From sequence record NC_061418.1: a stretch of 64,000 nucleotides of DNA. One strand, given 5' to 3'. Position 1 is the first letter of the stretch. Every line of letters begins with the position of its first letter. The notes under the pieces were generated by a model. It saw only the letters and a list, made by a program, of their open reading frames with translations. It searched no databases and was not told where the DNA came from. A program made the position numbers and the translations under genes. This document shows, in pieces, positions 7,691 through 62,212 of this stretch.

Positions 7691-7711
7691 GAGAGGGGAC
7701 GAACCCCTCTC
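7691..7711 (-). terminator. Intrinsic terminator
   Basis: 8-bp stem gagagggg/cccctctc with attatttttt tail on minus strand. Confidence 0.75.
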
Positions 7712-7720: not shown

Positions 7721-8194
7721 TCAATTAACGAAATAGATGATCACATCTTCTGACAATGTAAAGTTGGTCAGTAACGCGTCGTAGAACTTTTCTTTGCGAA
7801 CGCGCGTAAAGTAGAAATACGCTTCGTCAATGTAGACGTGCGTAATCGGCGCTTCGCGGTAAAACTGAGTGTAACCGCGCTCATACGGTTTCCCAGCAAT
7901 AGCCCTGACCTTTTCCGTCGGTGGATTAGCGTCACCGTAGAGACGCGCCTCAAAGTCATCCAGAAGCGTTTCTGTCGGGAGAAAGACCATCGAGTACTTA
8001 GGGTTTTTCTTCACTCGATCGAGTACCCATTTCGTCTTACCGGTTTGACGCGGTATTTTAAACCCGATTGTCCGACATTCGCGGAGAATGGTACCACGTC
8101 GCCAATCAATTCGTTTCGCCATTTCCGAGGTCTCAGAAATCAACGTTTTCTCTAGTGTCTGCGCTATCAATTCGAAATCAACTTTCTTAGCCAT
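7721..8194 (-). CDS. Small stand-alone P-loop NTPase (terminase/SF2-like ATPase motifs)
   Basis: Walker A-like IPRQTGKT and Walker B-like VYIDEA in 157 aa. Confidence 0.65.
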   Translation of the reverse strand: MAKKVDFELIAQTLEKTLISETSEMAKRIDWRRGTILRECRTIGFKIPRQTGKTKWVLDRVKKNPKYSMVFLPTETLLDDFEARLYGDANPPTEKVRAIAGKPYERGYTQFYREAPITHVYIDEAYFYFTRVRKEKFYDALLTNFTLSEDVIIYFVN

Positions 8195-8224
8195 GACGTC
8201 TTTAACCTTTTAACGTTTTAACGT

Positions 8225-8575
8225 TTACAAAGAATGGAACCATCCGTTTTCGTCTGGTTTCTCGGGGAATTTAAACGCGACAGTTTTATTGCGTTTAGCG
8301 AACTCTTGGTAGACCTTAGTACCGACCCAAAACCCACGCCGGATAATTTCAACATCGTCCCCGTTCAAACGGAAAGAGAACCGATGCTTCCCCGGGTCAA
8401 ACGCGATGTCCAGGAAATGACCATCTTCTAATTCGTCTACTGCGGACGTAAAGCGAAAATAGCCGCTTTTGTAAAGACACCCTGCCCGACTGGTTTGTCT
8501 GGAATTACCTACATTTTTAGGGACAGAAAGAAAACGCAAATTATCCAAATCAAGTTTCATGTTAATACCTGTCAA
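8225..8575 (-). CDS. Hypothetical protein, paralog family with 25373..25792 and 26953..27366
   Basis: LDIAFDPGKHRFSFRLNG and C-terminal NGWFHSL match the paralogs. Confidence 0.7.
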   Translation of the reverse strand: MTGINMKLDLDNLRFLSVPKNVGNSRQTSRAGCLYKSGYFRFTSAVDELEDGHFLDIAFDPGKHRFSFRLNGDDVEIIRRGFWVGTKVYQEFAKRNKTVAFKFPEKPDENGWFHSL

Positions 8576-8898
8576 TCGGTAAAGGTAATCGAAAAAGTTC
8601 CTTCGTTGCGATGCCAGTTAACCAGGAAGGGTAACCCTATTTCTTTTAAGATCTCGTTCAGAGCACTTGCAGGAGTTTCTTGTTGACTTCTCCCGAAAAA
8701 GGGATTAGCGATGGTATTTTGTAGCTCCCAGAAACGGTTACCGTTTTTCCGCTTCTTAGAGAAGCGTTTTCGAGACGTGACGGGTTGTTTCAGATAGAGA
8801 TGCAAAGGGCCTTTGTTACTCTGAACCACCACTAAACGTACAAACTGTTCGCTGTAACGTAACTCACCAAACAAAATGTCTTTGATTTTCTTTAGCAT
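8572..8898 (-). CDS. Hypothetical protein
   Basis: Short overlaps with both neighbours. Confidence 0.7.
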   Translation of the reverse strand: MLKKIKDILFGELRYSEQFVRLVVVQSNKGPLHLYLKQPVTSRKRFSKKRKNGNRFWELQNTIANPFFGRSQQETPASALNEILKEIGLPFLVNWHRNEGTFSITFTD

Positions 8899-9125
8899 TC
8901 GTTTAAATCTCCAGTAATCATCGTGGTTAGATTCCTGACTTTATTCAGGGTCGCAATGTCTTTTTCGACCGAGGCCACCGGGATGTTGTAAAAGAAAGCG
9001 ATCTCTTCTACTCGCATACCATGATTGGCAGCGTTCTCCATCGTTCGGGCGATCTGCGGATTTTCGAGTTGTGACATCAGTTCGTCAAACTCGGCCAGGT
9101 AAGCCAGATATTTGTCACGTTGCAT
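8892..9125 (-). CDS. Small helix-turn-helix protein
   Basis: GMRVEEIAFFYNIPVASVEKDI fits an HTH; paralog of 9158..9457. Confidence 0.65.
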   Translation of the reverse strand: MQRDKYLAYLAEFDELMSQLENPQIARTMENAANHGMRVEEIAFFYNIPVASVEKDIATLNKVRNLTTMITGDLNEC

Positions 9126-9157
9126 CCTTAGGTACCTTTTTACTGTGGCGGGTCAAA

Positions 9158-9457
9158 CTACTCATCGTACCCTTCTAATAGCGGGCTATGTCCGTTTTTA
9201 GAGATCCAAGCCTCCGCTAACTTATCAGATTTTTTCATAATCTCGGTGGCCTCGGTATAAATTTTAATATCATGATCGACATCATCTACCGGAACAGAAA
9301 AAGCGGCGGCAATGGTCTCGTCGTCTAAACCGTTTTCTCGGAACTGAATAAAGTAATGAGGTAAGTCAGTCCCGTGGTGTCTCGCGGTAAAAAGTTGATC
9401 GTATCCTTTCATCCAAAGTTGATGGATTTCCATTTCTTCCTGTTTTTCTTTTGTCAT
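9158..9457 (-). CDS. Small helix-turn-helix protein
   Basis: GLDDETIAAAFSVPVDDVDHDI fits an HTH; GAGGTG RBS. Confidence 0.65.
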   Translation of the reverse strand: MTKEKQEEMEIHQLWMKGYDQLFTARHHGTDLPHYFIQFRENGLDDETIAAAFSVPVDDVDHDIKIYTEATEIMKKSDKLAEAWISKNGHSPLLEGYDE

Positions 9458-9485
9458 ATTTTCACCTCTTTCTGAATTTTATACA

Positions 9486-10460
9486 TCAGTCTTCCTTACT
9501 GCTCCCGGAAACTACGCTAGTACGAATCCACTTTATTTTCAGTTGGCGATTAGGGCTATTACGAGCACCGGTCCAATAGCCGTGCCAGTGTGCCCGTCTG
9601 ATATGCGCTGCTCGCCCGGTCGTCTTCTGTCCTTTCTTTCGCTTCTCGATTTCTTCGAGGTAATCGACCCCTACCGGAAACTTACGGTGTGCGTTCAGGA
9701 ACCGTAGGCTATAGTGTTTACCCGACCGTTTCATCTGGGTAAGTCGAAAGGTATTACGGAAGTCAGCGCGGTCTTGCAACTCGTATTCCTGCGCAACAAA
9801 CAATGCCACGTTGAGTAGCTTAGTGTACGTTTCACGGTACCCGTCACGCATTAGAATATCGACAGCTTTAACCGTATCGATATTGTATTCTTTTGCAGCC
9901 CGTACAATAGTAGGGTCAGAAGCAATGACCTCCTCCAGTGTCAAACCTTCATCAAACGGGAAGAATAACGTTTGCGGGAAGCCGTTATCATTATACGGGT
10001 AAACGATCGTTAGACCCTCTTTCCCGCTCCAGTGTGTAACCGTAGAAAGGAAAATCCCTTCGATAGTCGGTTCCTCCGGGAGAGGGTGTTTGATAGGGCA
10101 CGCTGAAAGGTCGACGTACCCGGTCCAATGAGGGATAGTTTTCAAAACACTGAGCGGCAATTTACCGTTGAATTCAGAGTCCAATACATCGGGTAATAAT
10201 TCAGTAGGGATCTGATATTCAGGTTTAGTAATTTGCCAGCAATACGCCATGCTCATATGCCAAAAGATTTCACGATAATACGGGTTAGTTAAATCGATCT
10301 TATTGTTCCAGTTACGATTCTCTCCCCATATTTCGATAGGGTAGAAATACGGTGGAACCTCCCCTTTCTTTTCCGTGAGGATACGATTGAAGAAATCCTT
10401 CGCGTCCCATGCCCGTAAACGGGGTAAGAGCGTTTTCTCCACTGTCTCCAGTATTTTCAT
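9486..10460 (-). CDS. AcrVA2/FinQ-family protein (anti-defence candidate)
   Basis: 324 aa; WQITKPEY, LPLSVLKTIPHWTGYVDLS and C-terminal AHIRRAHWHGYWTG...IKW..VVSG parallel recalled Moraxella AcrVA2 motifs (WRNTLGIY, IFLNLPDWCVYVDIS, PHIRRGHWHGYWQG...VRW..FVNSG). Confidence 0.75.
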   Translation of the reverse strand: MKILETVEKTLLPRLRAWDAKDFFNRILTEKKGEVPPYFYPIEIWGENRNWNNKIDLTNPYYREIFWHMSMAYCWQITKPEYQIPTELLPDVLDSEFNGKLPLSVLKTIPHWTGYVDLSACPIKHPLPEEPTIEGIFLSTVTHWSGKEGLTIVYPYNDNGFPQTLFFPFDEGLTLEEVIASDPTIVRAAKEYNIDTVKAVDILMRDGYRETYTKLLNVALFVAQEYELQDRADFRNTFRLTQMKRSGKHYSLRFLNAHRKFPVGVDYLEEIEKRKKGQKTTGRAAHIRRAHWHGYWTGARNSPNRQLKIKWIRTSVVSGSSKED

Positions 10461-10763
10461 TTAGCTCTCCTCAGACTCGCGTGTTCCCAGGTTCCCGTTT
10501 CCGTTAAAGACGATTTGATAGTCTAACGTACCTTTACTGTTCAGCTCCTCTAAATGCTCAGAGACGGCCTCGTTATAGGGTTTGAGTAAGTGGTTCTTAC
10601 CCAGCGCCTCTAACGTCATGAAAATGATCAGGGTACTTTGATCAATCGGCGTAATGTTCTTATTCGTCAAGATCTCAATGACACGCGGAATATTCGCCTT
10701 GAGTTTCTCTAGGTCTTCATTCACCCGTAATCCCCTTATAAAACAATTCCATCCCTTTCTCAA
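10461..10763 (-). CDS. Hypothetical protein
   Basis: Abuts AcrVA2-like start and supplies its GAGGAG RBS; true start may be downstream of 10763. Confidence 0.65.
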   Translation of the reverse strand: MRKGWNCFIRGLRVNEDLEKLKANIPRVIEILTNKNITPIDQSTLIIFMTLEALGKNHLLKPYNEAVSEHLEELNSKGTLDYQIVFNGNGNLGTRESEES

Positions 10764-11322
10764 CGTTACTGCAAAAGACAGAGAAAAGCGCCTCTCGTAG
10801 CGATTGCGGCCGGAAGGGGTTATTGGCCTGCACGTGAACGTCGTAAACCGCTTTGTTTGCTAAACGTGCAGTGAACGTTTGTTTTGTCAATTTAAGCGTC
10901 TTGACGTCATGGCCGTAGGATTTACAGACCTTCCGTCCCTCGGTAAAGACCAACCCCATCGCACCGTGACCAACCAAAAGTTTGTCAGTCGGTACGAGTA
11001 GCGGGTGCTCTTTAGTACGGGGGCTAACAACCGTCCACCACATGTTCACAGGGATGAACCAATATGCATCTTTCGGGTTAAGATGCGTCCAGTCGCGGAT
11101 GCAGTTGTACATCTCTTCCTGCGTGGTCGGGCGGAAGTCGACCTGAACCCCGTTCATATTTTCACTGCGGTCATATTCGTAGATTTTACGACCCATCTTA
11201 ACCGAATAGACAAAAGCAATAATCGAATTATCTTGACGTAAAAGATTTTCTCTTGCCCATTTCCCGTATTCGATCTCTAACGCAATGACTTTTTCTGCAA
11301 TGCTGTTTTCCATCTCGTTCAC
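10717..11322 (-). CDS. Hypothetical protein
   Basis: 201-aa tiling ORF. Confidence 0.75.
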   Translation of the reverse strand: MNEMENSIAEKVIALEIEYGKWARENLLRQDNSIIAFVYSVKMGRKIYEYDRSENMNGVQVDFRPTTQEEMYNCIRDWTHLNPKDAYWFIPVNMWWTVVSPRTKEHPLLVPTDKLLVGHGAMGLVFTEGRKVCKSYGHDVKTLKLTKQTFTARLANKAVYDVHVQANNPFRPQSLREALFSVFCSNVEKGMELFYKGITGE

Positions 11323-11325
11323 CGA

Positions 11326-11700
11326 TTAATTAACTAATTTTTTCAGACTGACTTTCTCTAAGCCAGAGAACATTTCTGAGATTGAATTACCAAAACCTTC
11401 CCCTTTCAACTCTTTTTCAAGCGCGTGGTAAAGTTCGTCGAGCGTTTCATACTCTATTTTCGTTAATGAAGTTGAATAAGCCTTGGCCCGCGCCAAAATT
11501 TCTTCCTTGTAAACGTAAGCGAAAGCTTCGATTTTAGATAAATCGCGCACAGCAGCAACCGTAAGGGCACTGTGCAATTTCTGAGATGCTTTTGGGTTCT
11601 GTAGCGTCGCCGAGATATTCCCAACAAGAAACCCAATAACGTAGTCTGATTGTTTAAAGGCAGAGAATAATTTTTCATCGACGTTTTTCAGCGTGTTCAT
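11326..11700 (-). CDS. Hypothetical protein
   Basis: Tiling ORF, AAGGT RBS. Confidence 0.75.
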   Translation of the reverse strand: MNTLKNVDEKLFSAFKQSDYVIGFLVGNISATLQNPKASQKLHSALTVAAVRDLSKIEAFAYVYKEEILARAKAYSTSLTKIEYETLDELYHALEKELKGEGFGNSISEMFSGLEKVSLKKLVN

Positions 11701-11733
11701 TTTGTTTACCTTTTGTGTTTTAAGAAAAAATAA

Positions 11734-11922
11734 TTAAATATCTAAAGTGGGGTTCCACCAAGTAGCCAGACCGTCCAGCTCTTTGACAACTTTCGCCGCC
11801 TGTCGTGCAGGAATACGATACTTTCTTGCGACTCGGCGTTTTGCGCTTTTTACCGTGGTCATACAGGTAGACAGATCGTAGGTGACCAAATTATCAATTT
11901 TCTTACGCAGTGATTCTTTCAT
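11734..11922 (-). CDS. Small basic hypothetical protein
   Basis: 62 aa, K/R-rich, fills the gap between neighbours. Confidence 0.65.
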   Translation of the reverse strand: MKESLRKKIDNLVTYDLSTCMTTVKSAKRRVARKYRIPARQAAKVVKELDGLATWWNPTLDI

Positions 11923-11936
11923 TGTTTGGTTCTCTG

Positions 11937-12203
11937 TTATTGGATAATGATGGTGTTGTCGCTTTTCTTGAGGATCTGTTCACGGGTGTAGAGTTGACTA
12001 TCAAAACCCGTAGATGAGATAAAAACGCCGTTACCGAAATTGATGTAGCAGCCATCGCTATAAATGACTTCCACTTGTGAATAAAGCCGTTTCGTTAGTT
12101 TACACTGCTCTAAATCGTATTCTTTCTTTTTAGAAAGAAAATAAGGCGTTGCCAACAGCATTAGAATAACCAAACCAAGAAGAACATATGTCAATTTTTT
12201 CAT
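11937..12203 (-). CDS. Small membrane-anchored or secreted protein
   Basis: MKK followed by hydrophobic LTYVLLGLVILMLLATPYF. Confidence 0.7.
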   Translation of the reverse strand: MKKLTYVLLGLVILMLLATPYFLSKKKEYDLEQCKLTKRLYSQVEVIYSDGCYINFGNGVFISSTGFDSQLYTREQILKKSDNTIIIQ

Positions 12204-12460
12204 GCGAGTTTCTCTCTGAGTGCCATGTAAAGTAAACCGACTTGATCGGCGATGATTTTTCCTCGGCTGATGACAATCGGTTTCTGCGCTCCGTAGAACT
12301 CAATCGTTAACTTGATAAAAGGGACATCGCCAAGTATCCCTTTTATTTTACGACATTCTTCTTCCTTGCGGACGTTTCTGACATCACGAAGAAAGAAAAT
12401 GTAATTCTTATCGTTATCGTCAACAATGACTTTATTACCTACGATACTAAACTTAGGCAT
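12200..12460 (-). CDS. Hypothetical protein
   Basis: ATGA overlap with next gene. Confidence 0.7.
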   Translation of the reverse strand: MPKFSIVGNKVIVDDNDKNYIFFLRDVRNVRKEEECRKIKGILGDVPFIKLTIEFYGAQKPIVISRGKIIADQVGLLYMALREKLA

Positions 12461-12806
12461 GTTTTCTTACCTTAACTAAGGGAACATTAATCGATTTAAC
12501 GTTGTTGATTTTATAGCGCTGATTAGAAACCCCAAAGGAGCGTACTCGGATTCCAGTCTCTCCGACAAAACGTAGGTGAGAAAGATCAGAGAGCAAAGTA
12601 ACAAAGTCTCTTTTGGTTATTCGGCTCCATCCCAGAATAGCAACGGCGTTTTCCCCGACCAAACTCTCGATACAGATTTGAACAGGGTGGGTGTTAGGGG
12701 CGGCCAGAGACCGCCCCTCAATGACTGATTCTAACCAATTGCTAAGAGGAGTAGATTCCTCTAACGTGGGGATACGGTATTCTTTAACTGCCATAGCTGT
12801 TCTCAA
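12453..12806 (-). CDS. Hypothetical protein
   Basis: Tiling ORF. Confidence 0.7.
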   Translation of the reverse strand: MRTAMAVKEYRIPTLEESTPLSNWLESVIEGRSLAAPNTHPVQICIESLVGENAVAILGWSRITKRDFVTLLSDLSHLRFVGETGIRVRSFGVSNQRYKINNVKSINVPLVKVRKHA

Positions 12807-13284
12807 AGCGGAAGAAAGAACCCTCGATGGAGACCATCACCTTGCTTTCCGCAGGGTACAATTCGTCTAAGGCATCTGCCATCACTTTCTCAATATCGAT
12901 GTCGCCCCTCACACACGGACAAATACCGCCAGTGATTTCTTTAGTGGCGGTCGAGTCAAGCGTGAGCTTCATGACAAGGTCACAGTCAGCATCGACACAC
13001 GCCATGACACTGACGTTGTCTCTTTCATAGTCCAACTGGAAGCGGTAGTTATCATTGCCTGAATTATGGATACGGAATTCCTCAGGGATTTCCCCCGTCT
13101 TGTTACATTTCTCAAGAAGCGAAAGGACAAGATTGACGTGTTCTTTGACTAAATGAACAACGTTGTTTTTCATTTTCTCTACGGCTTCTTTTTGTCCTTT
13201 AACATGGGACATAATCGCTTTGAAAGCGACGTCAGAAGAAACAAAGGTTTTTAAAACTGCAGCAGAACGAAATTCAGTGGACAT
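12784..13284 (-). CDS. Hypothetical protein, first gene behind early promoter 2
   Basis: GGAG RBS, 166 aa. Confidence 0.8.
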   Translation of the reverse strand: MSTEFRSAAVLKTFVSSDVAFKAIMSHVKGQKEAVEKMKNNVVHLVKEHVNLVLSLLEKCNKTGEIPEEFRIHNSGNDNYRFQLDYERDNVSVMACVDADCDLVMKLTLDSTATKEITGGICPCVRGDIDIEKVMADALDELYPAESKVMVSIEGSFFRFENSYGS

Positions 13285-13339: not shown

Positions 13340-13366
13340 TTCACTCAAGTGATATAGGCTTTAAAA
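13340..13366 (-). promoter_or_regulatory. Phage early promoter 2
   Basis: TTTTAAAGCC-TATATCAC-TTGA-GTGAA. Confidence 0.85.
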
Positions 13367-13382: not shown

Positions 13383-13414
13383 AAAAGAAAGAGGGAATGA
13401 CCCCTCTTTCTTTT
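13383..13414 (-). terminator. Intrinsic terminator after AAA ATPase
   Basis: aaaagaaagaggg/ccctctttctttt stem with long T run on minus strand. Confidence 0.85.
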
Positions 13415-13421: not shown

Positions 13422-14738
13422 TTAGTTCAGAGAACGCCCTGTTTGAACGACGACTTCGCCTTCTTTCAGGTAGATTTTCTTGCGTGGCTTACGCAGCGCC
13501 GTTGCCAGCGGGATATCGCTTTTAGGAACGACATCAAACTTCGGTAAACCCGCAGCAGCGCGGGCTTCAACAGCCTCCATCGGAGTCAGCATACGGAAGT
13601 GTAACGGCTCGCCAAGATAGTGACGGCCATCGCGCATCAGTGCTGGTTCGATTTTTGATTTGTCGGTCAGGTTAGTGGTAATAATGATTTTACGCGTGGT
13701 GGCGCTCCCTACACCATCAGTTTCGTTCAGCAATTCTGACATCATCGTGTTACCGTCAGCACGCGGACGTAAGAGGATATCCCCATCTTCCACAATCACG
13801 ATTGGGAAGGTAGGCTCTTTACGGGTTTTCGCATCGTGGCTGTTTGGCAGCGTCAGCATATTACGGGTATTTTCAAAATGCGAACGGTCTTTGAAAAGTT
13901 CATAACGCGCATTTTCACCACTGGAGATTTCAACCCTTTCCATTTTGTCGTCGCTGAACGCGAAGATCTTAGAGATGAATTCTGGGTTTTCGAGGACCTC
14001 AGTTTTCTTCGCGTAGATCGGGAAAAGGTTCAGCGCCACGCAGGCAGCGGAAATGGCGGTCGATTTCCCGGTGCCCGGTTCGCCCATGAGAATCAGAACC
14101 GATTCATCAGACTGAATAAAGTCTTCGATGAGCGCTTCCACACCGCCGTTCAGGAACGGATAGAACTCCTTCTTCGTTTCGCCGCTATGACGCATGACTC
14201 TAGGTTCAAGGTGAGTCATTTCACCCATTGGCGTTTTCCGAATAACGACTTCAGAATAATAAAATTCCTCTTTCGTTTCGTCAGTACGGTGATCGATTTT
14301 GATATTTTCTTGGATCTGAATCAACAGATCGTCGTAGATATCTTTCGCCATCATACCTTCGATAGAGAGGTTAGACCTAATGTCGCTTTGAACGCGGATA
14401 CAGGCGATCGGACGATTGTATTTATCCAGTCCGATGAACTGGTCATCGTCGTGCTGGAAGAAGCGATGTTTTTCCAGGAACGCAGTTAACCACTGCGTGG
14501 ATTCGAAGTAGTATTTATTCTGATCGAACATTCGATCGGTATCGATGTTGAAGATAGGGAGTCGATTTGCAGTCAGGAAATGACGTACCATTTTATTGAC
14601 ACGAATTTCTTCCTCGTTATTGCCTACGAAACGTGCGTAGCTCCCGTAAGCTTCGCCGAACGATTCGAAGATATCATTCAGTGATTTAATAGGTGCGTTA
14701 TCAGAGAGAGATCCAGAGAAAAAAGCGTGCTTGTCCAT
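13422..14738 (-). CDS. AAA+ ATPase (classical AAA clade), monocistronic early gene
   Basis: Walker A GEPGTGKST, Walker B IVIVEDGD, LLNETDG, sensor TTN, arginine finger ALMRDGR. Confidence 0.9.
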   Translation of the reverse strand: MDKHAFFSGSLSDNAPIKSLNDIFESFGEAYGSYARFVGNNEEEIRVNKMVRHFLTANRLPIFNIDTDRMFDQNKYYFESTQWLTAFLEKHRFFQHDDDQFIGLDKYNRPIACIRVQSDIRSNLSIEGMMAKDIYDDLLIQIQENIKIDHRTDETKEEFYYSEVVIRKTPMGEMTHLEPRVMRHSGETKKEFYPFLNGGVEALIEDFIQSDESVLILMGEPGTGKSTAISAACVALNLFPIYAKKTEVLENPEFISKIFAFSDDKMERVEISSGENARYELFKDRSHFENTRNMLTLPNSHDAKTRKEPTFPIVIVEDGDILLRPRADGNTMMSELLNETDGVGSATTRKIIITTNLTDKSKIEPALMRDGRHYLGEPLHFRMLTPMEAVEARAAAGLPKFDVVPKSDIPLATALRKPRKKIYLKEGEVVVQTGRSLN

Positions 14739-18721: not shown

Positions 18722-20101
18722 TTAACTTACAGCTTTTAAGACGTTATAACTTACTGCTTCGACAGGTTTAGTGACGTCGTACGTCCGTAGCGCGTTTTCA
18801 TAGGCTACCGGGTCATGTTTGTTCAGCATGAAAAGCGCTTGAACAGATGCACCTGGTAAAGGAGAGAAAGGAAGGTTATTACTAGGTTCCGTATCAGGGA
18901 ATGCCATTTTGAAGAACTGACGAATTTCTTTATCGCCTAATACTTCTACTTCAGCCCTGACGTCTATTCTCCCGTCCCGCAGCAGCGCATCGTCAAGTTT
19001 CTCAGGGCGGTTAGTCGTCAGGAAAACGATAACATCATTCAACCGCAAGACGCCGTCTAACGCGTTGAGGAAATCTGACAAGCTACCGTTTAGGTACTCG
19101 TCCATTGCTTTATCGTCAGAACTTTGTTCTTCAACGACGAAAGGGGTATTTTTGAGTTCTTCTGGGTTTTCCGGTTTGTTTCCCTCTTTTAAGTCAATGA
19201 TAACCTTTTCTTTACTCCGCGCTTTCGTGAACGAATACGTATCAATATCCTCGATAATCACAACCCCGCCAGCTGCTCGTTGGAAAAGCGCTTGGTATTG
19301 TAATCCACCGGCGGGTTTGAGGATATGAATATCGCGCCCTAACGCGGCCGCTAATGCCGAAATCAAACTGCTCTTTCCGGTGCCTGGTAAACCGTATAAC
19401 AACACTGTGAACTTATAAGCCAGTCCTCGTGATTCGTACCAGTCTTTACTCTTATTAAAATCGAAGATAGGGTCGATTAACTCGCGCTGGACTTTATCCG
19501 TAACGACTATGGTTTTAAGGTCTCTTTTCTTCAGTCGGCACAAATAATTCCAACTGTCGGTAGTATTGACAAATGTCCGTATGTTGTCTTTACCCGTGTC
19601 TTTCAGCATAAACTCATCCATCAGGTTTAAGATAGGTTTATGGCTGCGACCGAATTTACTAATGCTAAGACGGTATTTCGAATTACTCGCAGCGTTAGCA
19701 TCAATTTCCGTGATAGAGAAAACAAACACAGTGCCCTTATGAAGAAAGAAATGTGACCCCACACCAGGCCCCACTGCGGCGGACTCTCCATTCACGTCGC
19801 CATCAATAGTTATCGTCCTACTCCAATGGAACCAGCTATTCTTAGCAAACCATTTCAGGAACGCCCCGTATTGTTCGGAGTTATAATTACTCCAGTTGGT
19901 TCCTGAGGTGTTAAAGACCAAACTGGTAACAAATTGACGTTTGACCCATTGTACTACCGCCTTGGGCGTTTTGATTAACCCCCAACCAATCGCCCCTGAT
20001 ACCGCGATAGAGCTCGCGGCGACAATCGCGTTCTGTGCCATGGGGTAGTCTTTAAAGTTAGAAAGAATATGGTCGTAAAATGACATTAGTTGTTCGAGCA
20101 T
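18722..20101 (-). CDS. BCS1-like membrane-anchored AAA+ ATPase
   Basis: N-terminal hydrophobic helix, Walker A YGLPGTGKSS, Walker B VIIEDID, LNALDG, TTN, ALLRDGRID. Confidence 0.9.
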   Translation of the reverse strand: MLEQLMSFYDHILSNFKDYPMAQNAIVAASSIAVSGAIGWGLIKTPKAVVQWVKRQFVTSLVFNTSGTNWSNYNSEQYGAFLKWFAKNSWFHWSRTITIDGDVNGESAAVGPGVGSHFFLHKGTVFVFSITEIDANAASNSKYRLSISKFGRSHKPILNLMDEFMLKDTGKDNIRTFVNTTDSWNYLCRLKKRDLKTIVVTDKVQRELIDPIFDFNKSKDWYESRGLAYKFTVLLYGLPGTGKSSLISALAAALGRDIHILKPAGGLQYQALFQRAAGGVVIIEDIDTYSFTKARSKEKVIIDLKEGNKPENPEELKNTPFVVEEQSSDDKAMDEYLNGSLSDFLNALDGVLRLNDVIVFLTTNRPEKLDDALLRDGRIDVRAEVEVLGDKEIRQFFKMAFPDTEPSNNLPFSPLPGASVQALFMLNKHDPVAYENALRTYDVTKPVEAVSYNVLKAVS

Positions 20102-23682: not shown

Positions 23683-23997
23683 TTATTTTTGCCTGATACG
23701 GAGTTCGAGTTTAATCGATAAATCGTCACCGTCAGTTTCATCAAATGAGAGACTCCGCCAGATTCCTATTTCTCCGCCGTACGCGTAGAAATAAATCTCC
23801 CTTTCGAAAATAACGAAGAGCTTCTCAATAATCGCTGTTTCTTCATTCGTAAAAGCAAATGACGGAGAAAGCGATTCCGAACGATGTTTAGGTAGTCCCT
23901 GTAACAATTCTACGGAATCATTAAACTCCGTCGAAGTAACACCGGAGTGACGAGCGTGACCAACTACCAGACACGTTTCTAAAACGCACGTTGTCAT
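23683..23997 (-). CDS. Hypothetical protein
   Basis: ATGA overlap with thyA stop. Confidence 0.75.
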   Translation of the reverse strand: MTTCVLETCLVVGHARHSGVTSTEFNDSVELLQGLPKHRSESLSPSFAFTNEETAIIEKLFVIFEREIYFYAYGGEIGIWRSLSFDETDGDDLSIKLELRIRQK

Positions 23998-25373
23998 ACC
24001 GACACCTGTAATTTAATGGCTGGGTGATGCTTGTACTCAGTGAAGACGAAATCTTCATAGGTGAGTTCAAACAACCCTTTCTTCGGCATCTCTGAGTTAT
24101 AGTAGTGCTCAGAGCGAACGTAACACTCAACCGGTTTGTAAGGCTCGCGAGTTAACTGTAACTTCGCTTCCTCTAACTGATTATTGTAGATATGGACGTT
24201 AGTCAGATTACCAACCAGCTTATTGGGCGCCATACCGAGCTCATGAGCAAATGACAGCAACATGAAGGCGTAGAAAGCCTGGTTAAAGGGCTCACCGGTC
24301 ATTGTGTCACAGCTCCGCATACTGTATTTCAAACTCAGCCACTGCGTCGGTACGTGGTTCTCCGTCAACCATTCCGCTTTACGCTCAGGGGACATTTTCG
24401 GCTGGTCACAATGTTCTTCGCTGTAGCAGTCCGACATATGGTCTTCCCAAAGATCCTGGAAGTACGGGTTAGCATTGTTCCTGCACCATTTTAACCGCTC
24501 GCTCAATGTCATCTCTTCTACGTAGAACTCTACCAGGAAATGACACGGGGTAAGGCATGGTTTACCCTCCACAATATTTTCCTGCGGCGTAACCTTAACG
24601 GTCTTAGTGCGTGGTACACCATGACTTGCTAAGAACTCTTCGCAGTTATCGGTCTTGCCATGATATTCCAGGCGCGGCCAGAAAATAGCATAAAGGTCCG
24701 GACTGTGAGTTTTTAAATGTTCCCACATCTCGTCACTACTGAGAGTAACTTCTTTCGTTTCTTCCGGCATCCAAAGCGGGTTCCACGCCGAGATCAGGAT
24801 ACGACGCGATTCCGGATTGTTCCGTAGGAGATCGAGCGCATACGCGATTTGGTCAACGCCCTTCTTCTCTAATGGATTCTCGGAGAAGTTTCGCCATGCT
24901 GACCCGTAAGGGGCATTAAGGTCACCCGCTTTGTTCACGGTGACCTGGCGAGTACGCGGTACACCTTTTTCATCTAGCCAACGATGGCCGTCTTCAACAG
25001 GCTGAATGGAGATCCCTTTGCTGTAAAACTCGATGTGAGCTTCTTTGTTGTTCTCTTCAAGCCACTTCAGGCGCTCGTAGTTTTCCAGAGGAACTTCTTT
25101 CACCACGTCAGCTTCTAAACGCCACGGGTCCCAGAACTTGACATTATTCTCCACCATGGTATCGAGGTGGAGTTCCCCGTTTAACATTGCCTTGTACTCA
25201 AACCACGCAGATTTACGCGGAACGAACTTCGTGGTGAGCAGAGGGAATTCCCCGGTCGAAAGGTCGTACTTCAGTTTCGCATCAAAAATAGAAATCGTCC
25301 CCGTTCCCGTCCTGTCTCCTCGCTGACGACCGGTTTCGATAATTTCACGTAGTAGATCGAGATACTGTTTCAC
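23994..25373 (-). CDS. thyA: Thymidylate synthase with three repeated insertions
   Basis: DRTGTGT, FPLLTTK, NPESRRILISAWNP, PCH catalytic Cys, MRSCD, PFNQAFY, HIY. Confidence 0.95.
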   Translation of the reverse strand: MKQYLDLLREIIETGRQRGDRTGTGTISIFDAKLKYDLSTGEFPLLTTKFVPRKSAWFEYKAMLNGELHLDTMVENNVKFWDPWRLEADVVKEVPLENYERLKWLEENNKEAHIEFYSKGISIQPVEDGHRWLDEKGVPRTRQVTVNKAGDLNAPYGSAWRNFSENPLEKKGVDQIAYALDLLRNNPESRRILISAWNPLWMPEETKEVTLSSDEMWEHLKTHSPDLYAIFWPRLEYHGKTDNCEEFLASHGVPRTKTVKVTPQENIVEGKPCLTPCHFLVEFYVEEMTLSERLKWCRNNANPYFQDLWEDHMSDCYSEEHCDQPKMSPERKAEWLTENHVPTQWLSLKYSMRSCDTMTGEPFNQAFYAFMLLSFAHELGMAPNKLVGNLTNVHIYNNQLEEAKLQLTREPYKPVECYVRSEHYYNSEMPKKGLFELTYEDFVFTEYKHHPAIKLQVSV

Positions 25374-38061: not shown

Positions 38062-39273
38062 TCATCCACCCCAATCAGCGGGGTTCTGATGAGAACCAGC
38101 CTCGATGCTTTCTACCATACTCCAATCTTTATCAAAGTTACCACCGCTGGCAGCAGGAGGGAACTTATTTGGAATTTCTGGAGCGCTCTGGCCGGCAGTG
38201 CCGTTACCGGATAACAAGTTATCAACCGCTTCACGTGATTGATCTAAACGACCTTTGTAAGAGTCCCCTTTAATGAATACAGTGCGCCCCCATGGTGTTT
38301 GGTTTTTAAATTCCCAAAGCATTTGTTGGAAGAGACTCTCTGTTTTCTCGCGGTCAGGATTCAGCCGCAGACCATCATCGACCCATGGTACTTCCGGCGA
38401 AAGAATCAACACGAGATCGTAATGCTCTTCAGCCGCGATAGCAGAAACAATAGGGTTAGGTTTACCCTCGTACAGCCGATGGTAATATTCCGTAATGAAG
38501 GCGTTCGTATCGATGAAACAGAGTCGATTAGAAGTACGTAATGCTTCCTCCTCCAGCTCTTTGTGACGATACGCAATCAACGGGTAGTCAGAACTACGGA
38601 GAGTCGCTTCCGAACCCGCTAAGACCGTTTCACAGTACGTACGGCCGTACTCTTCAACCCAGCTGGTATTGTAGAGTTTGGCGAGGTTCTTGACGAGGGA
38701 ACTTTTCCCAGAACTCTCAACGCCTAATACGACCACCCGCAAACAATAATCTTTACGGACAATGCTCGGGAGATATTCCCAATGGTCGTAAAGGTTTTCA
38801 CGGATCATCGTGGCGGAGATGGGGACGCGGGTACGGTTACTGTCAACGATAACGTGTTCTACAAAACCGAGGTGCGTTTTGTATTTTTCATCGTAATCCA
38901 GCTCGCTACTGAAAATAGCAATGCTCTGCGCCTGACTGTGATTAGCTGCCAGTCTACCTGCCTCGTTGAAAATCTTAGCGCCGAGCAGAGCAGCGTATTC
39001 TTTCCAGCCGTTCGGGTATTCCGGTACAGAAGCCTCATCAATGAAATCGATCGTGACGTGCTCTGTATCCGCGTAAGTCTGTTGCAGCCAGCGCAGACGA
39101 TTCTTGAAATTGAGTACCTTTTGGTCTCGTGGCGATTGTTTATCCAGCCAACGTTGGTCGTGGGAAAGAATGACGAGGACATGCTTAGACTGCACAGCAG
39201 CCTCTGTGATTAAGTTGATGTGCCCCAACGTAAGGGGTGCGAATTTACCGATTACTACGCCTAAGTCAAACAT
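38062..39273 (-). CDS. nadR: Bifunctional NMN adenylyltransferase / ribosylnicotinamide kinase NadR (no N-terminal HTH)
   Basis: GKFAPLTLGH, Walker A GVESSGKS, EYGR, FIDTN, PWVDDGLR. Confidence 0.93.
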   Translation of the reverse strand: MFDLGVVIGKFAPLTLGHINLITEAAVQSKHVLVILSHDQRWLDKQSPRDQKVLNFKNRLRWLQQTYADTEHVTIDFIDEASVPEYPNGWKEYAALLGAKIFNEAGRLAANHSQAQSIAIFSSELDYDEKYKTHLGFVEHVIVDSNRTRVPISATMIRENLYDHWEYLPSIVRKDYCLRVVVLGVESSGKSSLVKNLAKLYNTSWVEEYGRTYCETVLAGSEATLRSSDYPLIAYRHKELEEEALRTSNRLCFIDTNAFITEYYHRLYEGKPNPIVSAIAAEEHYDLVLILSPEVPWVDDGLRLNPDREKTESLFQQMLWEFKNQTPWGRTVFIKGDSYKGRLDQSREAVDNLLSGNGTAGQSAPEIPNKFPPAASGGNFDKDWSMVESIEAGSHQNPADWGG

Positions 39274-45437: not shown

Positions 45438-47507
45438 TTAAGCGGTTTCGTAATCAGTAATCTGACGACTGGTGTAAATGAACCGGTAAGGGTTAGGTTT
45501 GCTGTACTGTGCTACCGCACCGATCGGCGTATTGTAGAGATGAATCTCGCCGCTTCCATACGTTTGGAAGCTTGACTTCACGCCGTTGTCGTAACTACAG
45601 CTGTAGAAGTAAGATGCCCCTCTACCATAAACGTTAGAACCTACCGTATCTTTCCCGACGACGTACAACGCACCTTTAATACTGTCGGTGCTTTGGTTGC
45701 CGCTGGCGATCGTTTCGAGGTGAGCCACGAAGGTATTCAACCCGTACTCTTCGATAGGGTAACCGTCTACATTTCGGTAAGTCGATTTGAATCGAATCCC
45801 GGTTACACCCGGCCCCACTAATGACCCACGTTTTTGTCCATTACCCGAACCGAAGTGATTCTCAGATACGCAACTGACTTCGAGGAACGTACCTTGTACT
45901 CCCAACGGAATTGTCTGACGGTCACTGCCGTGATAGGTACCGTAAGTCCCGCCGTTACTGAAATGGCAATCTTGAGAGAAGACCTCAGCCCCGTAGTTGT
46001 TCAGACACGCCGTTGAACAGGTTCCGGTAACCTCCACGCCCTTCAACCATAAAGACGGTTTCGCGTTGATCGCCACAGACTCAGCGCCCAAACCAATGTC
46101 GGTGTCAGAGACTTTCACATTGGAAACGTAAATTGTGCTGTTCCCAGTGAAATTCAGTCCCGTGTTCTTCACGACAACTTTAACGTTACTGTCAGGCTTA
46201 CGGCTGTTCGACGTCTGGACAATGATCGCAGTGGACGTCACGCAGTAGCTTCCTACTGTGGCCACTACCGCAGCAGGACCGTCTACTTCCACTAAGCGTT
46301 TAGGTAACCCGTTACTGTCTAACGTGCCGTAGTCAAAGACACCGGCGATATTTAGACCTGTTGCTAAATATTGATAGACAACGTTAGAGTCGGAGTAAAG
46401 CGACCAGTTAGTGATCCCCAGATCGCCCGTAAAGGTCGGTACGGTGCCACCGGTGCCATAGATACCGATCTTACGGTCATTCACTGTACGTTGAACGAAG
46501 AACGGTTTAGAGCCCTTCACGACGATACTGGTGGCAATAGGCGATTTATCAATTGCAGCGTTAAGAGTTTTCAGTGGGTTAGCTTCACTTCCATCATTCC
46601 CGTCTGCACCGAGATCAGAGTCAACGTAGTAGACCATCCCGTAGGGGAAGTACCATTCGCTCAGATCAAAGTCGGTTGAGAATCGCATCAGTCCCTGGGC
46701 CAACGCTCCCTCGTAAGGGAAGACCGCAGCGAGTGGATCAAAAACCGCAGGGAGTTTAGGAACTACCGGCAAACAGTTATTTGCACTGTCGTAACTGGTC
46801 TCGTAAGAAGGACCGGTCAGTTCCAGTAATTGCCCAGCGCGGAAACGCGCCACTGTATTACCCGATTGTAGCGAACTTTGAGTCATTGACAACGATCCGT
46901 CATTCCCTAAAATAATCCCAGTATTCGCGGCAGTCGGTAAGAAACTCCCTTGTTTCCCAACCACAAAGTTTTCGCCGTTAATTCGGCTCTTCCCAGAGAG
47001 CGTAAAGGTTTTACCGTCTGACTGATAAAGTTGATACGGGGTGCGGAGCCAATCGCGAATCGTGGTTTCTTGACCGAAATAAACTTCGAGTGTCCCGATG
47101 TACATCAATGAAGTAGCAACGGTTTTCAGTGTAAAGACACCGATTGTGGTCGTCAACGCAGTGGGAATGAAGACTTCCTGTTTGATATCGGTCATGTCCA
47201 GCTGTAGGCCGTACAACGTATTCAAACGGGTAACGATATCTTCGGCCGTGAATATTCCGGCAGTAGACATGAACACCACGGGCTCGGTCAGGACTCTATT
47301 GAGATTGACCCGGTTGTAATCAAAGACTGCTGAATCACGGTAGTCACCTGCATCGGTCGCTACCGCGGTGATACGCGTGTTAAAATTCCCGGTCGTCAGG
47401 GCAGTGAGGTTGATGAAATCCAAATCGCTTTCTTTAAAAAAGGCACCGTACTGCGTGTTCAGCTGACGAACCAGAAGCGCTTTACTTTTTAACGAGAAAT
47501 CTGTCAT
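45438..47507 (-). CDS. Virion structural protein / tail fibre with C-terminal beta-helix
   Basis: N-terminal jumbo-phage virion repeat domain (YNRVNL...LNTLYGLQLDMTDI); YVDSDLGADGNDGSEANPLKTLNAAI beta-helix cap; full-length paralog of 47524 gene. Confidence 0.75.
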   Translation of the reverse strand: MTDFSLKSKALLVRQLNTQYGAFFKESDLDFINLTALTTGNFNTRITAVATDAGDYRDSAVFDYNRVNLNRVLTEPVVFMSTAGIFTAEDIVTRLNTLYGLQLDMTDIKQEVFIPTALTTTIGVFTLKTVATSLMYIGTLEVYFGQETTIRDWLRTPYQLYQSDGKTFTLSGKSRINGENFVVGKQGSFLPTAANTGIILGNDGSLSMTQSSLQSGNTVARFRAGQLLELTGPSYETSYDSANNCLPVVPKLPAVFDPLAAVFPYEGALAQGLMRFSTDFDLSEWYFPYGMVYYVDSDLGADGNDGSEANPLKTLNAAIDKSPIATSIVVKGSKPFFVQRTVNDRKIGIYGTGGTVPTFTGDLGITNWSLYSDSNVVYQYLATGLNIAGVFDYGTLDSNGLPKRLVEVDGPAAVVATVGSYCVTSTAIIVQTSNSRKPDSNVKVVVKNTGLNFTGNSTIYVSNVKVSDTDIGLGAESVAINAKPSLWLKGVEVTGTCSTACLNNYGAEVFSQDCHFSNGGTYGTYHGSDRQTIPLGVQGTFLEVSCVSENHFGSGNGQKRGSLVGPGVTGIRFKSTYRNVDGYPIEEYGLNTFVAHLETIASGNQSTDSIKGALYVVGKDTVGSNVYGRGASYFYSCSYDNGVKSSFQTYGSGEIHLYNTPIGAVAQYSKPNPYRFIYTSRQITDYETA

Positions 47508-47523
47508 TTTAAATTCGCCCCAG

Positions 47524-49566
47524 TTAAGCGGTATAAATGAATTGATACGGGGTCAGAAGCTGTGTGGCCGGTTTAGTGCCAATGTCGGTATCGAACAGGG
47601 CGATTTTCCCTACTCCGTTTGGAATGAACGAGAACGCCGAGTTATCCCCTTTACAACTCCAGTACTGAGCCGATGCAGCGGTCGTCGCATTCGCACCGGT
47701 GGTAAAGTGCGCCAGATTACTCAACGTGTTCGTCACGCTATTGGACTGGCAAGCGATATTCACCGAGAACGTTCCTTCACCGGAGTCTTTGACGTGAGAA
47801 CCGTCACAATGGCTGTATACGGAGTTCAGACGCAGGATTGTCCCGTACGCAGAGAGACCGGAGGCCGCAGAGGTATGGTTACTATCAAAACCGCAGTAGC
47901 TGACTGTTGCTCTATTCTCCACGATCCAATACTTACTGTTCATCGCAGGTAATACACGGTCACTGTTGTAACTGAATCCGCCACTGAAACCAAATTGTGC
48001 AACACAGTCTTGGTGTGCAACGTTATAACCGTAGCTTCCGAAGGATGGGCCCTTGAACGTCCACCCGAACCGACAGGCGTTCATGTACAGATACCCGTAG
48101 GTTCTCGGTGTGGTCATGTCTGCGATAAAGCCATTGTAGGAGAGATCAAAATTACATTTCTCCATGAACACGTTACCCGCATCGGCGACTGACCCTGAGA
48201 GCGTTTTTGCAATCAGGTAAACATTACTGTCTGGCTTGCGGCTATCGGTTAATCGAACGTAGACCCGATTATTGGTGTTGTCGATGTAATACGAGTGCGG
48301 AGTGTTCGCACAGTCAGCAATCGAGGTCTTAGCAGTCATTCTCCCGTACCCGGCATCGCTGTATACCGTTTTGTCTACCACGGCAGCAATGTCACTGATT
48401 TTACTGTACCAGGTGTTGGCATCGTACCCTGACCAATCAGTACTTTGACGGGTGGAGGTAAAGGTAGGGTTAACGTCACCGTAACCAATAATATCGACCG
48501 TACGTTGGCGAATAGTTTGTGTCCAGCCAGAGTCGGCATCGTAGTAAAGATCCGCGTAACCTTTTACGCGAATAACTCTGGCAGCAGGCAGTCGGTTTAT
48601 CGCACGACGGAAGGTTTTGAACGCAGTCGCTGCGGTCGAACCGTCATTGGTGTCGGAACCGTCTTTGACATCAACGAAGACCACTGTACCTGTACCGGCA
48701 CGTTTACTGGTGACGTCGAAACCCAGAGAGTAGGTCAATGTCCCCGCATTCAACGACGCTGTTAACCCTAACGTTTCAGGGATCACTGCAAGCTGAGACG
48801 GTAACATCGGCACTTTAGGAAGCAAGTTACCCGTGGCGTCGTAAGACGTTTCACCGTTGACTCCTAAGGTCTCCAGTAGACGACCATTGCGGAAGCGTCC
48901 TATCAACGTGTTCTTGCTGTTTGGGTGATAGTCGATTGCCGGGATAATATTCCCAGTAGGAGAAAGATAAAGCGCAGTTAACCCGGAACGTTGCGAAATA
49001 GTACGGCTGACGTCAACGATGTCTTTCCCAGCCAGTTTCCAGTGACCGCCTAAAAAGCTGAGGGTGTTATAGTCACTTCCCACGGTAAACTGTAGCGCAT
49101 TGAAATATTGGTAAACCGCCTCTTGTTTGCCGAGATAGATAGTTACGCTACCGGTGTACACGAGGTGATTATCTGCCACGCTGACTGTGATCTTTCTGAC
49201 GCCAGTGGCAATGTCATCTGGGCGATACGGGCCGTCTACGAGATCAGTGGTAGTTAGGGCGAGTTGGTATTTCTCGTTCAGGTACGGAATTAAATCAACG
49301 ATACGAGAAAGGGTATAGTCTTCCAGTTGACAGTAGGGTCGGGCCAATAGCGTTTTAAAGCTCAGGCGATTATACTGTAATGTTACACCGAGCGATTGCA
49401 GGGACGAGCCGTTAGTGACGTTAATCGTCGTATTCAAACCGTTAACAACGGTAGTGTTAACAGCGGGTGTACCTAACGAGATTGACGAAGTCGTGTACAT
49501 TGTCCCGTTTGCTTCGTTAATCAGGTCAACGGCAATCTGTTTTGGGGTCTGTTTTAAATCAACCAT
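47524..49566 (-). CDS. Virion structural protein / tail fibre with C-terminal beta-helix
   Basis: Start reassigned to MVDLKQ (GAGGG RBS); YNRLSF...LNEKYQLALTTTDL; FVDVKDGSDTNDGSTAATAFKTFRRAI. Confidence 0.75.
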   Translation of the reverse strand: MVDLKQTPKQIAVDLINEANGTMYTTSSISLGTPAVNTTVVNGLNTTINVTNGSSLQSLGVTLQYNRLSFKTLLARPYCQLEDYTLSRIVDLIPYLNEKYQLALTTTDLVDGPYRPDDIATGVRKITVSVADNHLVYTGSVTIYLGKQEAVYQYFNALQFTVGSDYNTLSFLGGHWKLAGKDIVDVSRTISQRSGLTALYLSPTGNIIPAIDYHPNSKNTLIGRFRNGRLLETLGVNGETSYDATGNLLPKVPMLPSQLAVIPETLGLTASLNAGTLTYSLGFDVTSKRAGTGTVVFVDVKDGSDTNDGSTAATAFKTFRRAINRLPAARVIRVKGYADLYYDADSGWTQTIRQRTVDIIGYGDVNPTFTSTRQSTDWSGYDANTWYSKISDIAAVVDKTVYSDAGYGRMTAKTSIADCANTPHSYYIDNTNNRVYVRLTDSRKPDSNVYLIAKTLSGSVADAGNVFMEKCNFDLSYNGFIADMTTPRTYGYLYMNACRFGWTFKGPSFGSYGYNVAHQDCVAQFGFSGGFSYNSDRVLPAMNSKYWIVENRATVSYCGFDSNHTSAASGLSAYGTILRLNSVYSHCDGSHVKDSGEGTFSVNIACQSNSVTNTLSNLAHFTTGANATTAASAQYWSCKGDNSAFSFIPNGVGKIALFDTDIGTKPATQLLTPYQFIYTA

Positions 49567-49607
49567 TTTCAATTCATCCCTCATTATACGGGGCGGTTAA
49601 AGTACGA

Positions 49608-52943: not shown

Positions 52944-52952
52944 CTAAACCTC

Positions 52953-54776: not shown

Positions 54777-54822
54777 GATTATTCCTTGTAGAAAGCCAGA
54801 GAGGGATTCCTCTCTGGTGTTA

Positions 54823-57501: not shown

Positions 57502-57545
57502 TTCGGTACCTGTATAGTCTGGGTAAATAAGAGGGTATCTAGATC

Positions 57546-57555
57546 GTCATAAAAA
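57546..57555 (-). promoter_or_regulatory. Candidate late promoter TTTTTATGAC
   Basis: Between terminator and tailspike gene. Confidence 0.55.
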
Positions 57556-57559
57556 CACA

Positions 57560-57585
57560 AGAGTAGGGCCGATCGGCCCTACTCT
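57560..57585 (-). terminator. Terminator hairpin (26-bp perfect palindrome)
   Basis: agagtagggccgatcggccctactct. Confidence 0.75.
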
Positions 57586-57600
57586 CTATATTTTCAGCGC

Positions 57601-57810: not shown

Positions 57811-57813
57811 GTC

Positions 57814-59796: not shown

Positions 59797-59824
59797 TGCC
59801 TATACCTCAGAATTGAAAGACTAA

Positions 59825-59834
59825 GTCATAGAAA
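59825..59834 (-). promoter_or_regulatory. Candidate late promoter TTTCTATGAC
   Basis: Directly after terminator stem, 29 nt before tailspike ATG. Confidence 0.55.
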
Positions 59835-59865: not shown

Positions 59866-59874
59866 AATTTGTTA

Positions 59875-62209: not shown

Positions 62210-62212
62210 ACG

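Follow-up and report, generated by a model that had tools for sequence, protein, structure and literature searches.

What might a relative of a Cas12a inhibitor be doing in a lytic phage of a host species from which Cas12a is not known? The question is raised by gp018 (MOA67_gp018 / YP_010297599.1), a gene of Klebsiella phage KpLz-2_45 (NC_061418.1 / MN871446.1; 296,707 bp) whose product carries the label 'hypothetical protein' in RefSeq. It lies in the first 64 kb of the phage genome (100% identity over the region tested), and it is this whole stretch of 64,000 nucleotides (nt) that we call the window. No bacterial protein other than AcrVA2, which gp018 resembles, is so far known to read a nascent peptide and bring about the destruction of the mRNA that encodes it. 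A preliminary description, made from the letters of the window, assigned gp018 to the AcrVA2/FinQ family and supposed that it silences some protein other than Cas12a. Our analysis leaves very little doubt about the family, and on balance we favour the view that gp018 is a functional member that silences one specific protein, probably not Cas12a, in a co-translational manner.

Family membership of gp018

The 324-amino-acid (aa) protein that the preliminary description had placed at 9486-10460 is encoded by an intact minus-strand open reading frame (ORF) at exactly those positions, with a GAGGAG Shine-Dalgarno sequence located 7 nt 5' of its ATG. All of the motifs that had been quoted are present in gp018, namely WQITKPEY (residues 75-82), LPLSVLKTIPHWTGYVDLS (residues 101-119) and AHIRRAHWHGYWTG (residues 285-298), and the terminal block, given as 'about 9573-9605', is encoded by 9567-9605 (codons for H286-G298). 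The gene is single-copy, and its base composition is ordinary for KpLz-2_45 and does not signal a recent acquisition.

A phmmer search with gp018 against all PDB chain sequences matched AcrVA2 alone (7CI1, 323 aa; E=2.8e-7), a likeness that is therefore far beyond chance. The match consists of two blocks in identical order, in keeping with the AcrVA2-like length (324 vs 323 aa) and motif order remarked on at the outset. A 60-sequence family profile matched AcrVA2 in the PDB with E=1.2e-44, residues 8-319 aligning with residues 8-319, and overall identity between the two proteins is ~16-20%. The AlphaFold2 model of gp018, built on the 60-sequence alignment, is confident (predicted local distance difference test (pLDDT) 90.1, predicted template modelling score 0.89), and a Foldseek search of the PDB with this model returned 7CI1 and 7CI2 alone at E<=0.001 (E~1.5e-12, probability 1.00, template modelling (TM) score 0.51-0.55), with the next match at E=0.26. 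The moderate TM scores leave room for domain orientations that differ between the predicted model and the AcrVA2 structures. When compared with predicted viral structures, the same model matched homologs in Erwinia and Dickeya jumbo phages.

The relationship extends to FinQ. Genes annotated 'protein finQ' on plasmids are the best tblastn matches to gp018 (E=1e-10, 28% identity, residues 69-312), and hhalign aligned the gp018 family profile with FinQ at 99.9% probability (E=2.1e-32, residues 72-324 vs 86-359). Residues 1 to ~70 of gp018, which form the putative specificity part, lie outside every FinQ alignment produced by tblastn or hhalign.

Homology searches recovered six close relatives followed by hundreds of distant ones, all of them pre-tagged PF26125 'AcrVA2-like', as is the cluster identical to gp018 (P0001). 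Some of the relatives bear the NCBI/UniRef name 'AcrVA2 family anti-CRISPR protein', and PHROGs places gp018 in phrog_6160 (E=2e-36), whose function is not annotated. No significant match to gp018 came from the local Pfam and NCBIfam libraries. These libraries were equally blank for NCBI-named AcrVA2-family proteins and for annotated FinQ, which indicates that the local copies hold no model of the family; we therefore rejected the idea that the empty scans speak against membership. Other labels were dismissed: DUF6895 (Pfam E=0.19) and the PHROG 'minor tail protein' (E=0.24) are not significant, and 'putative mycothiosynthase', the annotation of the homolog in phage RisingSun, is unsupported by any family or structure search.

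The assignment of gp018 to the AcrVA2/FinQ family, upheld by tests of sequence, profile, structure and key residues, is thus almost certain; the phmmer and profile check against AcrVA2 and FinQ that had been set beforehand gave significant matches to both.

It should be noted that Hsp70/DnaK substrate-binding domains recur among the PDB fold matches below AcrVA2 (E 0.26-4, probability <=0.11). These matches are not significant, and are curious given that the gp018 family is thought to grip nascent peptides.

Functional residues and conservation

AcrVA2 lowers the mRNA and protein of Cas12a through recognition of the N-terminal Cas12a polypeptide; its activity is abolished and its binding kept in the H286A, R288A and H291A mutants, and W79A and D89A cause partial defects (Marino et al., bioRxiv 10.1101/2022.11.29.518452). 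On the cas12a transcript, AcrVA2 brings an abrupt loss of coverage towards the 3' side, with 5' reads retained. In the crystal, D129 and D195 contact the peptide, and the Cas12a peptide of 7CI2 sits in a groove. In the phmmer alignment, the three essential residues of AcrVA2 occur at identical positions in gp018 as H286, R288 and H291 (the numbering of the PDB chain is that of Marino et al. plus one). Among the 60 family sequences, R288, H291 and H293 are found in all 60 and H286 in 59. The mean identity of gp018 to distant relatives reaches 77% over residues 284-300 and lies at 10-23% in all other blocks. W75, which corresponds to AcrVA2 W79, is present in 60/60 sequences, and every family-invariant residue is kept in gp018.

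Close to this tryptophan, the jumbo-phage clade (six sequences) has substitutions of its own. Position 76 is R in 54/60 family sequences and Q, M or A in the clade (Q in gp018), and position 85, the equivalent of AcrVA2 D89, is D in 44/60 and P in 6/6 clade members, including gp018 (P85). By our reading of the phmmer alignment, gp018 E96 falls at the position of AcrVA2 E98.

This combination of a fixed C-terminal module and a remainder that varies agrees with published work, in which the C-terminus of AcrVA2-family proteins is taken to provide a shared activity and the remainder to provide specificity (Marino et al., bioRxiv 10.1101/2022.11.29.518452). The chemistry by which mRNA is destroyed was still undefined across the family as of a 2026 review (PMC13131331).

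The carrier phage and its host

KpLz-2_45 is a lytic jumbo phage of Klebsiella (297 kb) and not a conjugative plasmid. Its genus, Siatvirus, was moved into Chimalliviridae by ICTV, the international virus-taxonomy committee, in 2025 (PMC12451628), and its RefSeq annotation includes 'tubulin PhuZ' (gp302) as well as seven 'RNA polymerase beta subunit' genes, that is, split RNA polymerases (RNAPs). The chimallin was located through synteny, a chimallin-then-RNAP-subunit gene order being common to KpLz-2_45 and Erwinia phage Special G. It is gp315, a 633-aa protein annotated 'hypothetical protein' and encoded at 218438-220339, outside the window. In the PDB, gp315 matches phiPA3 PhuN (E=7.2e-7) and chimallin 7SQQ/8IGG (E=1.2e-4), and BLASTP aligns it with the Special G nuclear shell protein (E=3e-6); a tblastn search of all phages with the Special G chimallin had no match in the KpLz-2_45 group. 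FBKp24 gp082 was considered as a chimallin and rejected, being a phiKZ gp182-like virion protein. A nucleus-like compartment has been seen in the literature during infection by relatives such as Serratia PCH45. The supposition that this is a phiKZ-like, nucleus-type phage hence holds as far as sequence and literature show. Six clustered tRNA genes, with a gene for an HNH endonuclease lying among them, are also found in the KpLz-2_45 record, as is one DNA primase gene flagged with one frameshift.

The supposition that the host lacks Cas12a holds to the same extent. In 520 surveyed genomes of K. pneumoniae, types I-E and IV-A3 were the only CRISPR systems found, the types described for the species are only I-E, I-F and IV-A, and type V/Cas12a is not known for it (PMC11792477). 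The literature further describes the chimallivirus genome as shielded from DNA-targeting CRISPR nucleases.

Distribution of the family

In an exhaustive profile search, representative clusters defined at 50% identity numbered 4,527 at E<=1e-3, of which 3,122 reached E<=1e-10. The family is therefore huge, and it occurs mostly where Cas12a is absent, leaving nearly all of its targets undefined. In plasmids, 660 records match gp018 by tblastn, 597 of them conjugative. Among deposited phages, 85 records have a homolog detectable using gp018, and 77 of these are assigned to Erwinia (56), Klebsiella (7), 'Serratia' (6, with K. pneumoniae as host), Dickeya (3), Salmonella (3) and Escherichia (2), the listed members being jumbo phages of 235-307 kb; the other eight are small Leptospira, Pasteurella and Acinetobacter phages. 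The gp018 protein is 100% identical in six other deposited phages, and a gp018-like gene is present in at least 13 deposited Klebsiella jumbo-phage records. No Pseudomonas chimallivirus is among the 85 records, though 68 Pseudomonas records carry chimallin, and the gene is on that account accessory and not part of a chimallivirus core.

Several near-identical phages of Klebsiella hosts (MN871447-MN871453) are deposited unannotated as 'UNVERIFIED_ORG: Serratia phage Kp...', and the matched ones have a 99.7-100% identical AcrVA2-like protein. Six further family members (P0009, P0122, P0139, P0143, P0178 and P0202) are 430-575 aa long, with the AcrVA2-like domain at the C-terminus and an N-terminal extension of 75-280 residues; such long proteins may be fusions that hint at partners or targets.

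The putative gp018 operon and its neighbours

The features of the locus are collected in Table 1; strong terminator-like hairpins flank the tightly packed gp018 block at either end.

Table 1. Positions of gp018, its conserved regions, its neighbours and associated sequence elements in the window.
Feature	Coordinates	Strand	Remarks
gp018 (MOA67_gp018 / YP_010297599.1)	9486..10460	-	Intact 324-aa ATG-to-stop ORF; AcrVA2/FinQ-family (Pfam PF26125 'AcrVA2-like')
C-terminal HxRRxHWHGYWxG module of gp018 (H286, R288, H291, H293), residues 284-300	9561..9611	-	Conservation, 60 sequences
Second conserved block of gp018, residues 69-123 (invariant W75, Y82, P102, Y115)	10092..10256	-	Aligned to AcrVA2 chain 74-126
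gp019, 87 aa	10461..10724	-	Stop codon abuts gp018 start (TAA-ATG)
gp017, 99 aa	9158..9457	-	Lineage-specific small ORF between gp018 and gp016
gp016, 77 aa	8892..9125	-	Conserved companion of AcrVA2-like gene; possible helix-turn-helix (HTH) protein
14-gene same-strand block gp026..gp013, including gp018	7721..13284	-	Intergenic gaps <=33 nt or overlaps; putative early operon
Promoter-like motif CTATATCAC	13349..13357	-	~65 nt 5' of gp026 ATG; putative early (virion-RNAP) promoter
Terminator-like hairpin, 14 bp stem + T-run	13383..13414	-	Ends preceding transcription unit; sequence scan
Terminator-like hairpin, 8 bp stem, 6 GC pairs, + T-run	7691..7711	-	After gp013; sequence scan

The motif CTATATCAC at the head of the block has 7 exact copies in the window, with 0.18 expected, and 7/7 lie on the coding strand (minus-strand 9-mers beginning at 2216, 13357, 14796, 18680, 31318, 31878 and 42933). 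Its extended form is TTTTAA-N3-CTATATCAC, and two copies directly follow terminator hairpins. In phage FBKp24 (genus Maaswegvirus), an exact copy occupies the same relative position, after an annotated terminator and ahead of the gene that opens the orthologous operon. In jumbo phages that encode RNAPs, conserved AT-rich motifs of ~10 nt that can be detected bioinformatically are early promoters read by the virion RNAP, and middle and late promoters are not predictable by such motifs (PMC7598289). We therefore think that CTATATCAC probably marks the early virion-RNAP promoters of KpLz-2_45 and that gp018, in a block headed by this motif, is probably an early gene. A scan for sigma-70 promoters gave 10 sites vs 12.5 in shuffled sequence and carried no information, which is no surprise given that the phage encodes RNAPs of its own.

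The block is syntenic with FBKp24 gp189..gp201. The identity of gp018 to its FBKp24 ortholog, gp195, is 85%, whereas 10/11 of the other shared operon genes have 33-60%, and this comparison between Siatvirus and Maaswegvirus shows gp018 to be under stronger constraint than the neighbouring genes. The genes flanking the ortholog are different in FBKp24, where the equivalents of gp017, gp019 and gp021 are replaced or absent. A counterpart of gp017 is missing both from FBKp24, which has two unrelated ORFs there, and from a 264-kb metagenomic contig with an AcrVA2-like gene, and gp017 has no family match; for gp019, too, neither FBKp24 nor the 264-kb contig has a homolog. Both were for this reason rejected as conserved partners of gp018. 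The form of the gp019-gp018 junction implies translational coupling of the two genes.

The better candidate for a partner is gp016. Its homolog in FBKp24 (gp198, 41% identity) is found 3' of the AcrVA2-like gene, and its homolog on the 264-kb contig (31% identity, E=5e-18) shares a stop/start junction with an AcrVA2-like gene whose product is 53% identical to gp018. With a further candidate on a 144-kb contig, gp016 lies downstream in at least three lineages. A homology search with gp016 gave two clusters only, insufficient for a deep profile. The predicted structure has four helices (pLDDT 91.3), and nearly all of its fold matches are to sigma region 4 or LuxR-type HTH domains; none is significant (best E=0.74), and the Pfam match to Sigma70_ECF (E=0.027) is below the cut-off. 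As the model only suggests, gp016 may be a DNA-binding regulator of the gp018 module, like the anti-CRISPR-associated (Aca) proteins. Paralogy of gp016 and gp017, which have a motif similar by eye, is not claimed, as BLASTP finds no similarity between them.

Other genes of the window

The leftward gene array to which the gp018 block belongs also includes two AAA-type ATPases, one of which has a BCS1_N domain (13422-14738 and 18722-20101, both minus strand), and a NadR-like nicotinamide-nucleotide adenylyltransferase (38062-39273, minus strand). A 459-aa thymidylate synthase ORF (23994-25373, minus strand) matches Pfam ThyA in two stretches (residues ~1-200 and 344-459), and the ~140 unmatched residues in the middle look like a large insertion. 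At 45438-49584 (minus strand) there are two tandem paralogous proteins of ~690 aa with an N-terminal DUF7941, after which an extended series of genes for tail fibres, spikes and depolymerase-like proteins occupies 51216-63991 (minus strand). Pair and series together match what has been described in the relative phiKp24 as a hyperbranched tail-fibre apparatus. An AcrVA2-like gene on metagenomic contig L014 is adjoined by five DUF7941 genes in tandem.

Discussion

Based on its kinship with AcrVA2, we can present a proposal for the action of gp018. The protein would be made early and would act in the cytoplasm, the site of all translation during chimallivirus infection. Its variable N-terminal and middle part would recognise the N-terminal peptide of a single protein as it emerges, and its conserved C-terminal HxRxxH module would trigger the loss of that protein's mRNA, as AcrVA2 does with Cas12a. 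The target is most likely not Cas12a itself, since the host species is not known for it, the phage DNA is presumably shielded, and residues beside the W79-equivalent are altered in the jumbo-phage clade. The AcrVA2 mechanism halts new synthesis only (Marino et al., bioRxiv 10.1101/2022.11.29.518452), so that a lytic phage would gain most from a target that must be made after infection, and the most plausible candidates are an induced host defence or stress factor or the gene product of a co-resident mobile element.

These considerations bear directly on the idea that gp018 has been retained as an anti-Cas12a protein for occasional hosts or plasmids with a type V-A system. Such a role would agree with the family, the essential residues and, as we read the alignment, the glutamate E96 at the position of AcrVA2 E98. 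Apart from the absence of type V from the K. pneumoniae systems (PMC11792477) and the shielding of the chimallivirus genome from DNA-targeting CRISPR nucleases, it has to contend with the low identity to AcrVA2, with the replacement of the D89-equivalent and of the neighbouring arginine in the clade, and with the occurrence of most family members without Cas12a (Marino et al., bioRxiv 10.1101/2022.11.29.518452), and we regard it as highly improbable. The silenced gene might instead belong to a rival element, be it a co-resident plasmid, a prophage, a satellite or a co-infecting phage, in which case gp018 would serve competition or superinfection exclusion and not anti-defence. The mechanism would be the one we favour, the difference being the owner of the target. 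Both characterised family members act in mobile-element conflicts, FinQ on another plasmid, and mobile elements dominate the family, as the plasmid and phage counts above indicate; moreover, the genes of a newly induced or arriving element need de novo synthesis, which suits a block of new synthesis. However, the strong conservation of this single-copy gene among the genera of Klebsiella jumbo phages would be better explained by a constant host target than by rivals that vary, so that a rival's gene seems an unlikely target, if one to be kept in mind.

A broader action, with gp018 as a ribosome- or mRNA-associated factor that aids general early host shut-off, would agree with the position of the gene in a putative early block, the usual place of host-takeover genes, with the undefined enzymology of HxRxxH (PMC13131331), and with the restriction of strong conservation across the family to the C-terminal module. 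In AcrVA2 transcriptomics, however, cas12a was the sole significantly down-regulated expressed gene (Marino et al., bioRxiv 10.1101/2022.11.29.518452), and the conjugative plasmids and prophages that stably carry the family would not tolerate a general shut-off factor; we give this reading only a small chance. A smaller one still falls to self-regulation, in which gp018 would recognise a phage nascent chain and clear its mRNA, sharpening the switch from early to middle expression. Phage mRNAs are translated in the cytoplasm, the presumed site of gp018, gene and operon are kept across two genera, and the possibly DNA-binding gp016 suggests a regulatory module, but self-regulation has no precedent in the family, and a gene undetected in the Pseudomonas chimalliviruses behaves as an accessory and not as a core regulator. 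That gp018 is a decaying passenger devoid of function is barely credible: the genes right beside it come and go among relatives, as is typical of accessory regions, but its own ORF is intact, the family-invariant residues are kept, the AlphaFold2 model is confident, and conservation is high both between genera (85%, against 33-60% for neighbours) and among the six phages with an identical protein.

Several points weigh against the reading that we favour, silencing of one specific protein. Everything beyond family membership we infer from a single characterised relative that shares ~16-20% identity. The conservation of HxRxxH shows a shared chemistry and not a known reaction, because the mRNA-destroying step is undefined even for AcrVA2 (PMC13131331), and a close ortholog (P0005, L013:5001-5966, on the 144-kb contig) has T at position 286, with R288, H291 and H293 kept. 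A block on new synthesis is of limited value to a lytic phage that acts fast, except against a target that is induced or short-lived. The early timing of gp018 is deduced from the motif and from a statement in a review (PMC7598289), and the possible HTH assignment of the gp016 model is not statistically significant.

With these points in mind, we tentatively suggest a more specific form of the same reading, which we think possible and by no means probable: the early module of enterobacterial jumbo phages, an AcrVA2-like protein with an HTH companion, might silence a host or rival-element protein that still threatens a phage hidden in its nucleus. An example of such a target would be an induced cytoplasmic defence directed at RNA or translation. 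If true, this would be the first defined target of the AcrVA2 family that is neither Cas12a nor plasmid-borne, and a natural system for learning how the HxRxxH module destroys mRNA. A lytic Klebsiella chimallivirus offers a clean case, Cas12a not being known from the host species and being irrelevant to shielded DNA, and gp018 being single-copy, strongly constrained and probably early. With expression data on phage and host, a second kind of target could come to light, and the general mechanism of the family might be more readily defined.

Comparison with known systems

Earlier work had already noted AcrVA2-like proteins in huge phages (Al-Shayeb et al.), and AcrVA2 homologs on plasmids and megaphages, typically without Cas12a, were proposed to have other targets (Marino et al., bioRxiv 10.1101/2022.11.29.518452). 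The idea of a target other than Cas12a for such homologs, those of megaphages included, is thus already published, and by analogy it seems reasonable for gp018. What is added here is the firm placement in a family of a gene left unannotated in at least 13 deposited records of Klebsiella jumbo phages, the direct identification of the KpLz-2_45 chimallin, a probable early operon with its promoter-like motif, the clade-specific substitutions beside the W79-equivalent, and the conserved gp016 companion.

The arrangement of gp018 and gp016 recalls acr-aca operons, in which an anti-CRISPR gene precedes that of a small HTH regulator; here a gene of anti-defence type precedes, within one operon, the gene of a small conserved protein with an HTH-resembling model. 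It differs in that the HTH matches of gp016 are not significant and in that no known Aca family matches gp016; to reach the phage DNA of a chimallivirus, a regulator that binds DNA would also need entry into the phage nucleus.

FinQ, a fertility inhibitor encoded by IncI/IncF-type conjugative plasmids, is homologous to gp018 over residues 72-324, including the HIRRxHWH module. It lowers F tra mRNAs and so provides a target other than Cas12a (Marino et al., bioRxiv 10.1101/2022.11.29.518452). Unlike gp018, it is 361 aa long, plasmid-borne and active on the transfer genes of another plasmid, and the first ~70 residues of gp018 have no aligned counterpart in it; inhibition of F transfer would be of no obvious use to a lytic phage.

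With AcrVA2 of a Moraxella bovoculi prophage (7CI1/7CI2), gp018 shares length (324 vs about 322 aa), fold, an alignment over the full-length profile and carriage by a phage, together with W79 and the essential H286, R288 and H291. In contrast to AcrVA2, to which it is ~16-20% identical, gp018 has P at the D89-equivalent and Q where 54/60 sequences have R after the Trp, and it resides in a lytic, presumably nucleus-forming jumbo phage and not in a prophage, with no AcrVA1 partner seen nearby. As the host of this phage is not known for Cas12a, its target is presumably another protein.

Other kin are in the jumbo phages of Enterobacterales (for example Special G gp231, RisingSun, Yoloswag, Dickeya JA13 and FBKp24 gp195), which share both the family and the type of carrier, at 235-307 kb. 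The homologs from non-Klebsiella jumbo phages are 23-28% identical to gp018; that of Special G, gp231, already annotated 'putative protein FinQ', has chimallin and a gene for an RNAP subunit ~5 kb away. Among these examples, FBKp24 gp195, the 85%-identical ortholog in a syntenic operon, stands closest.

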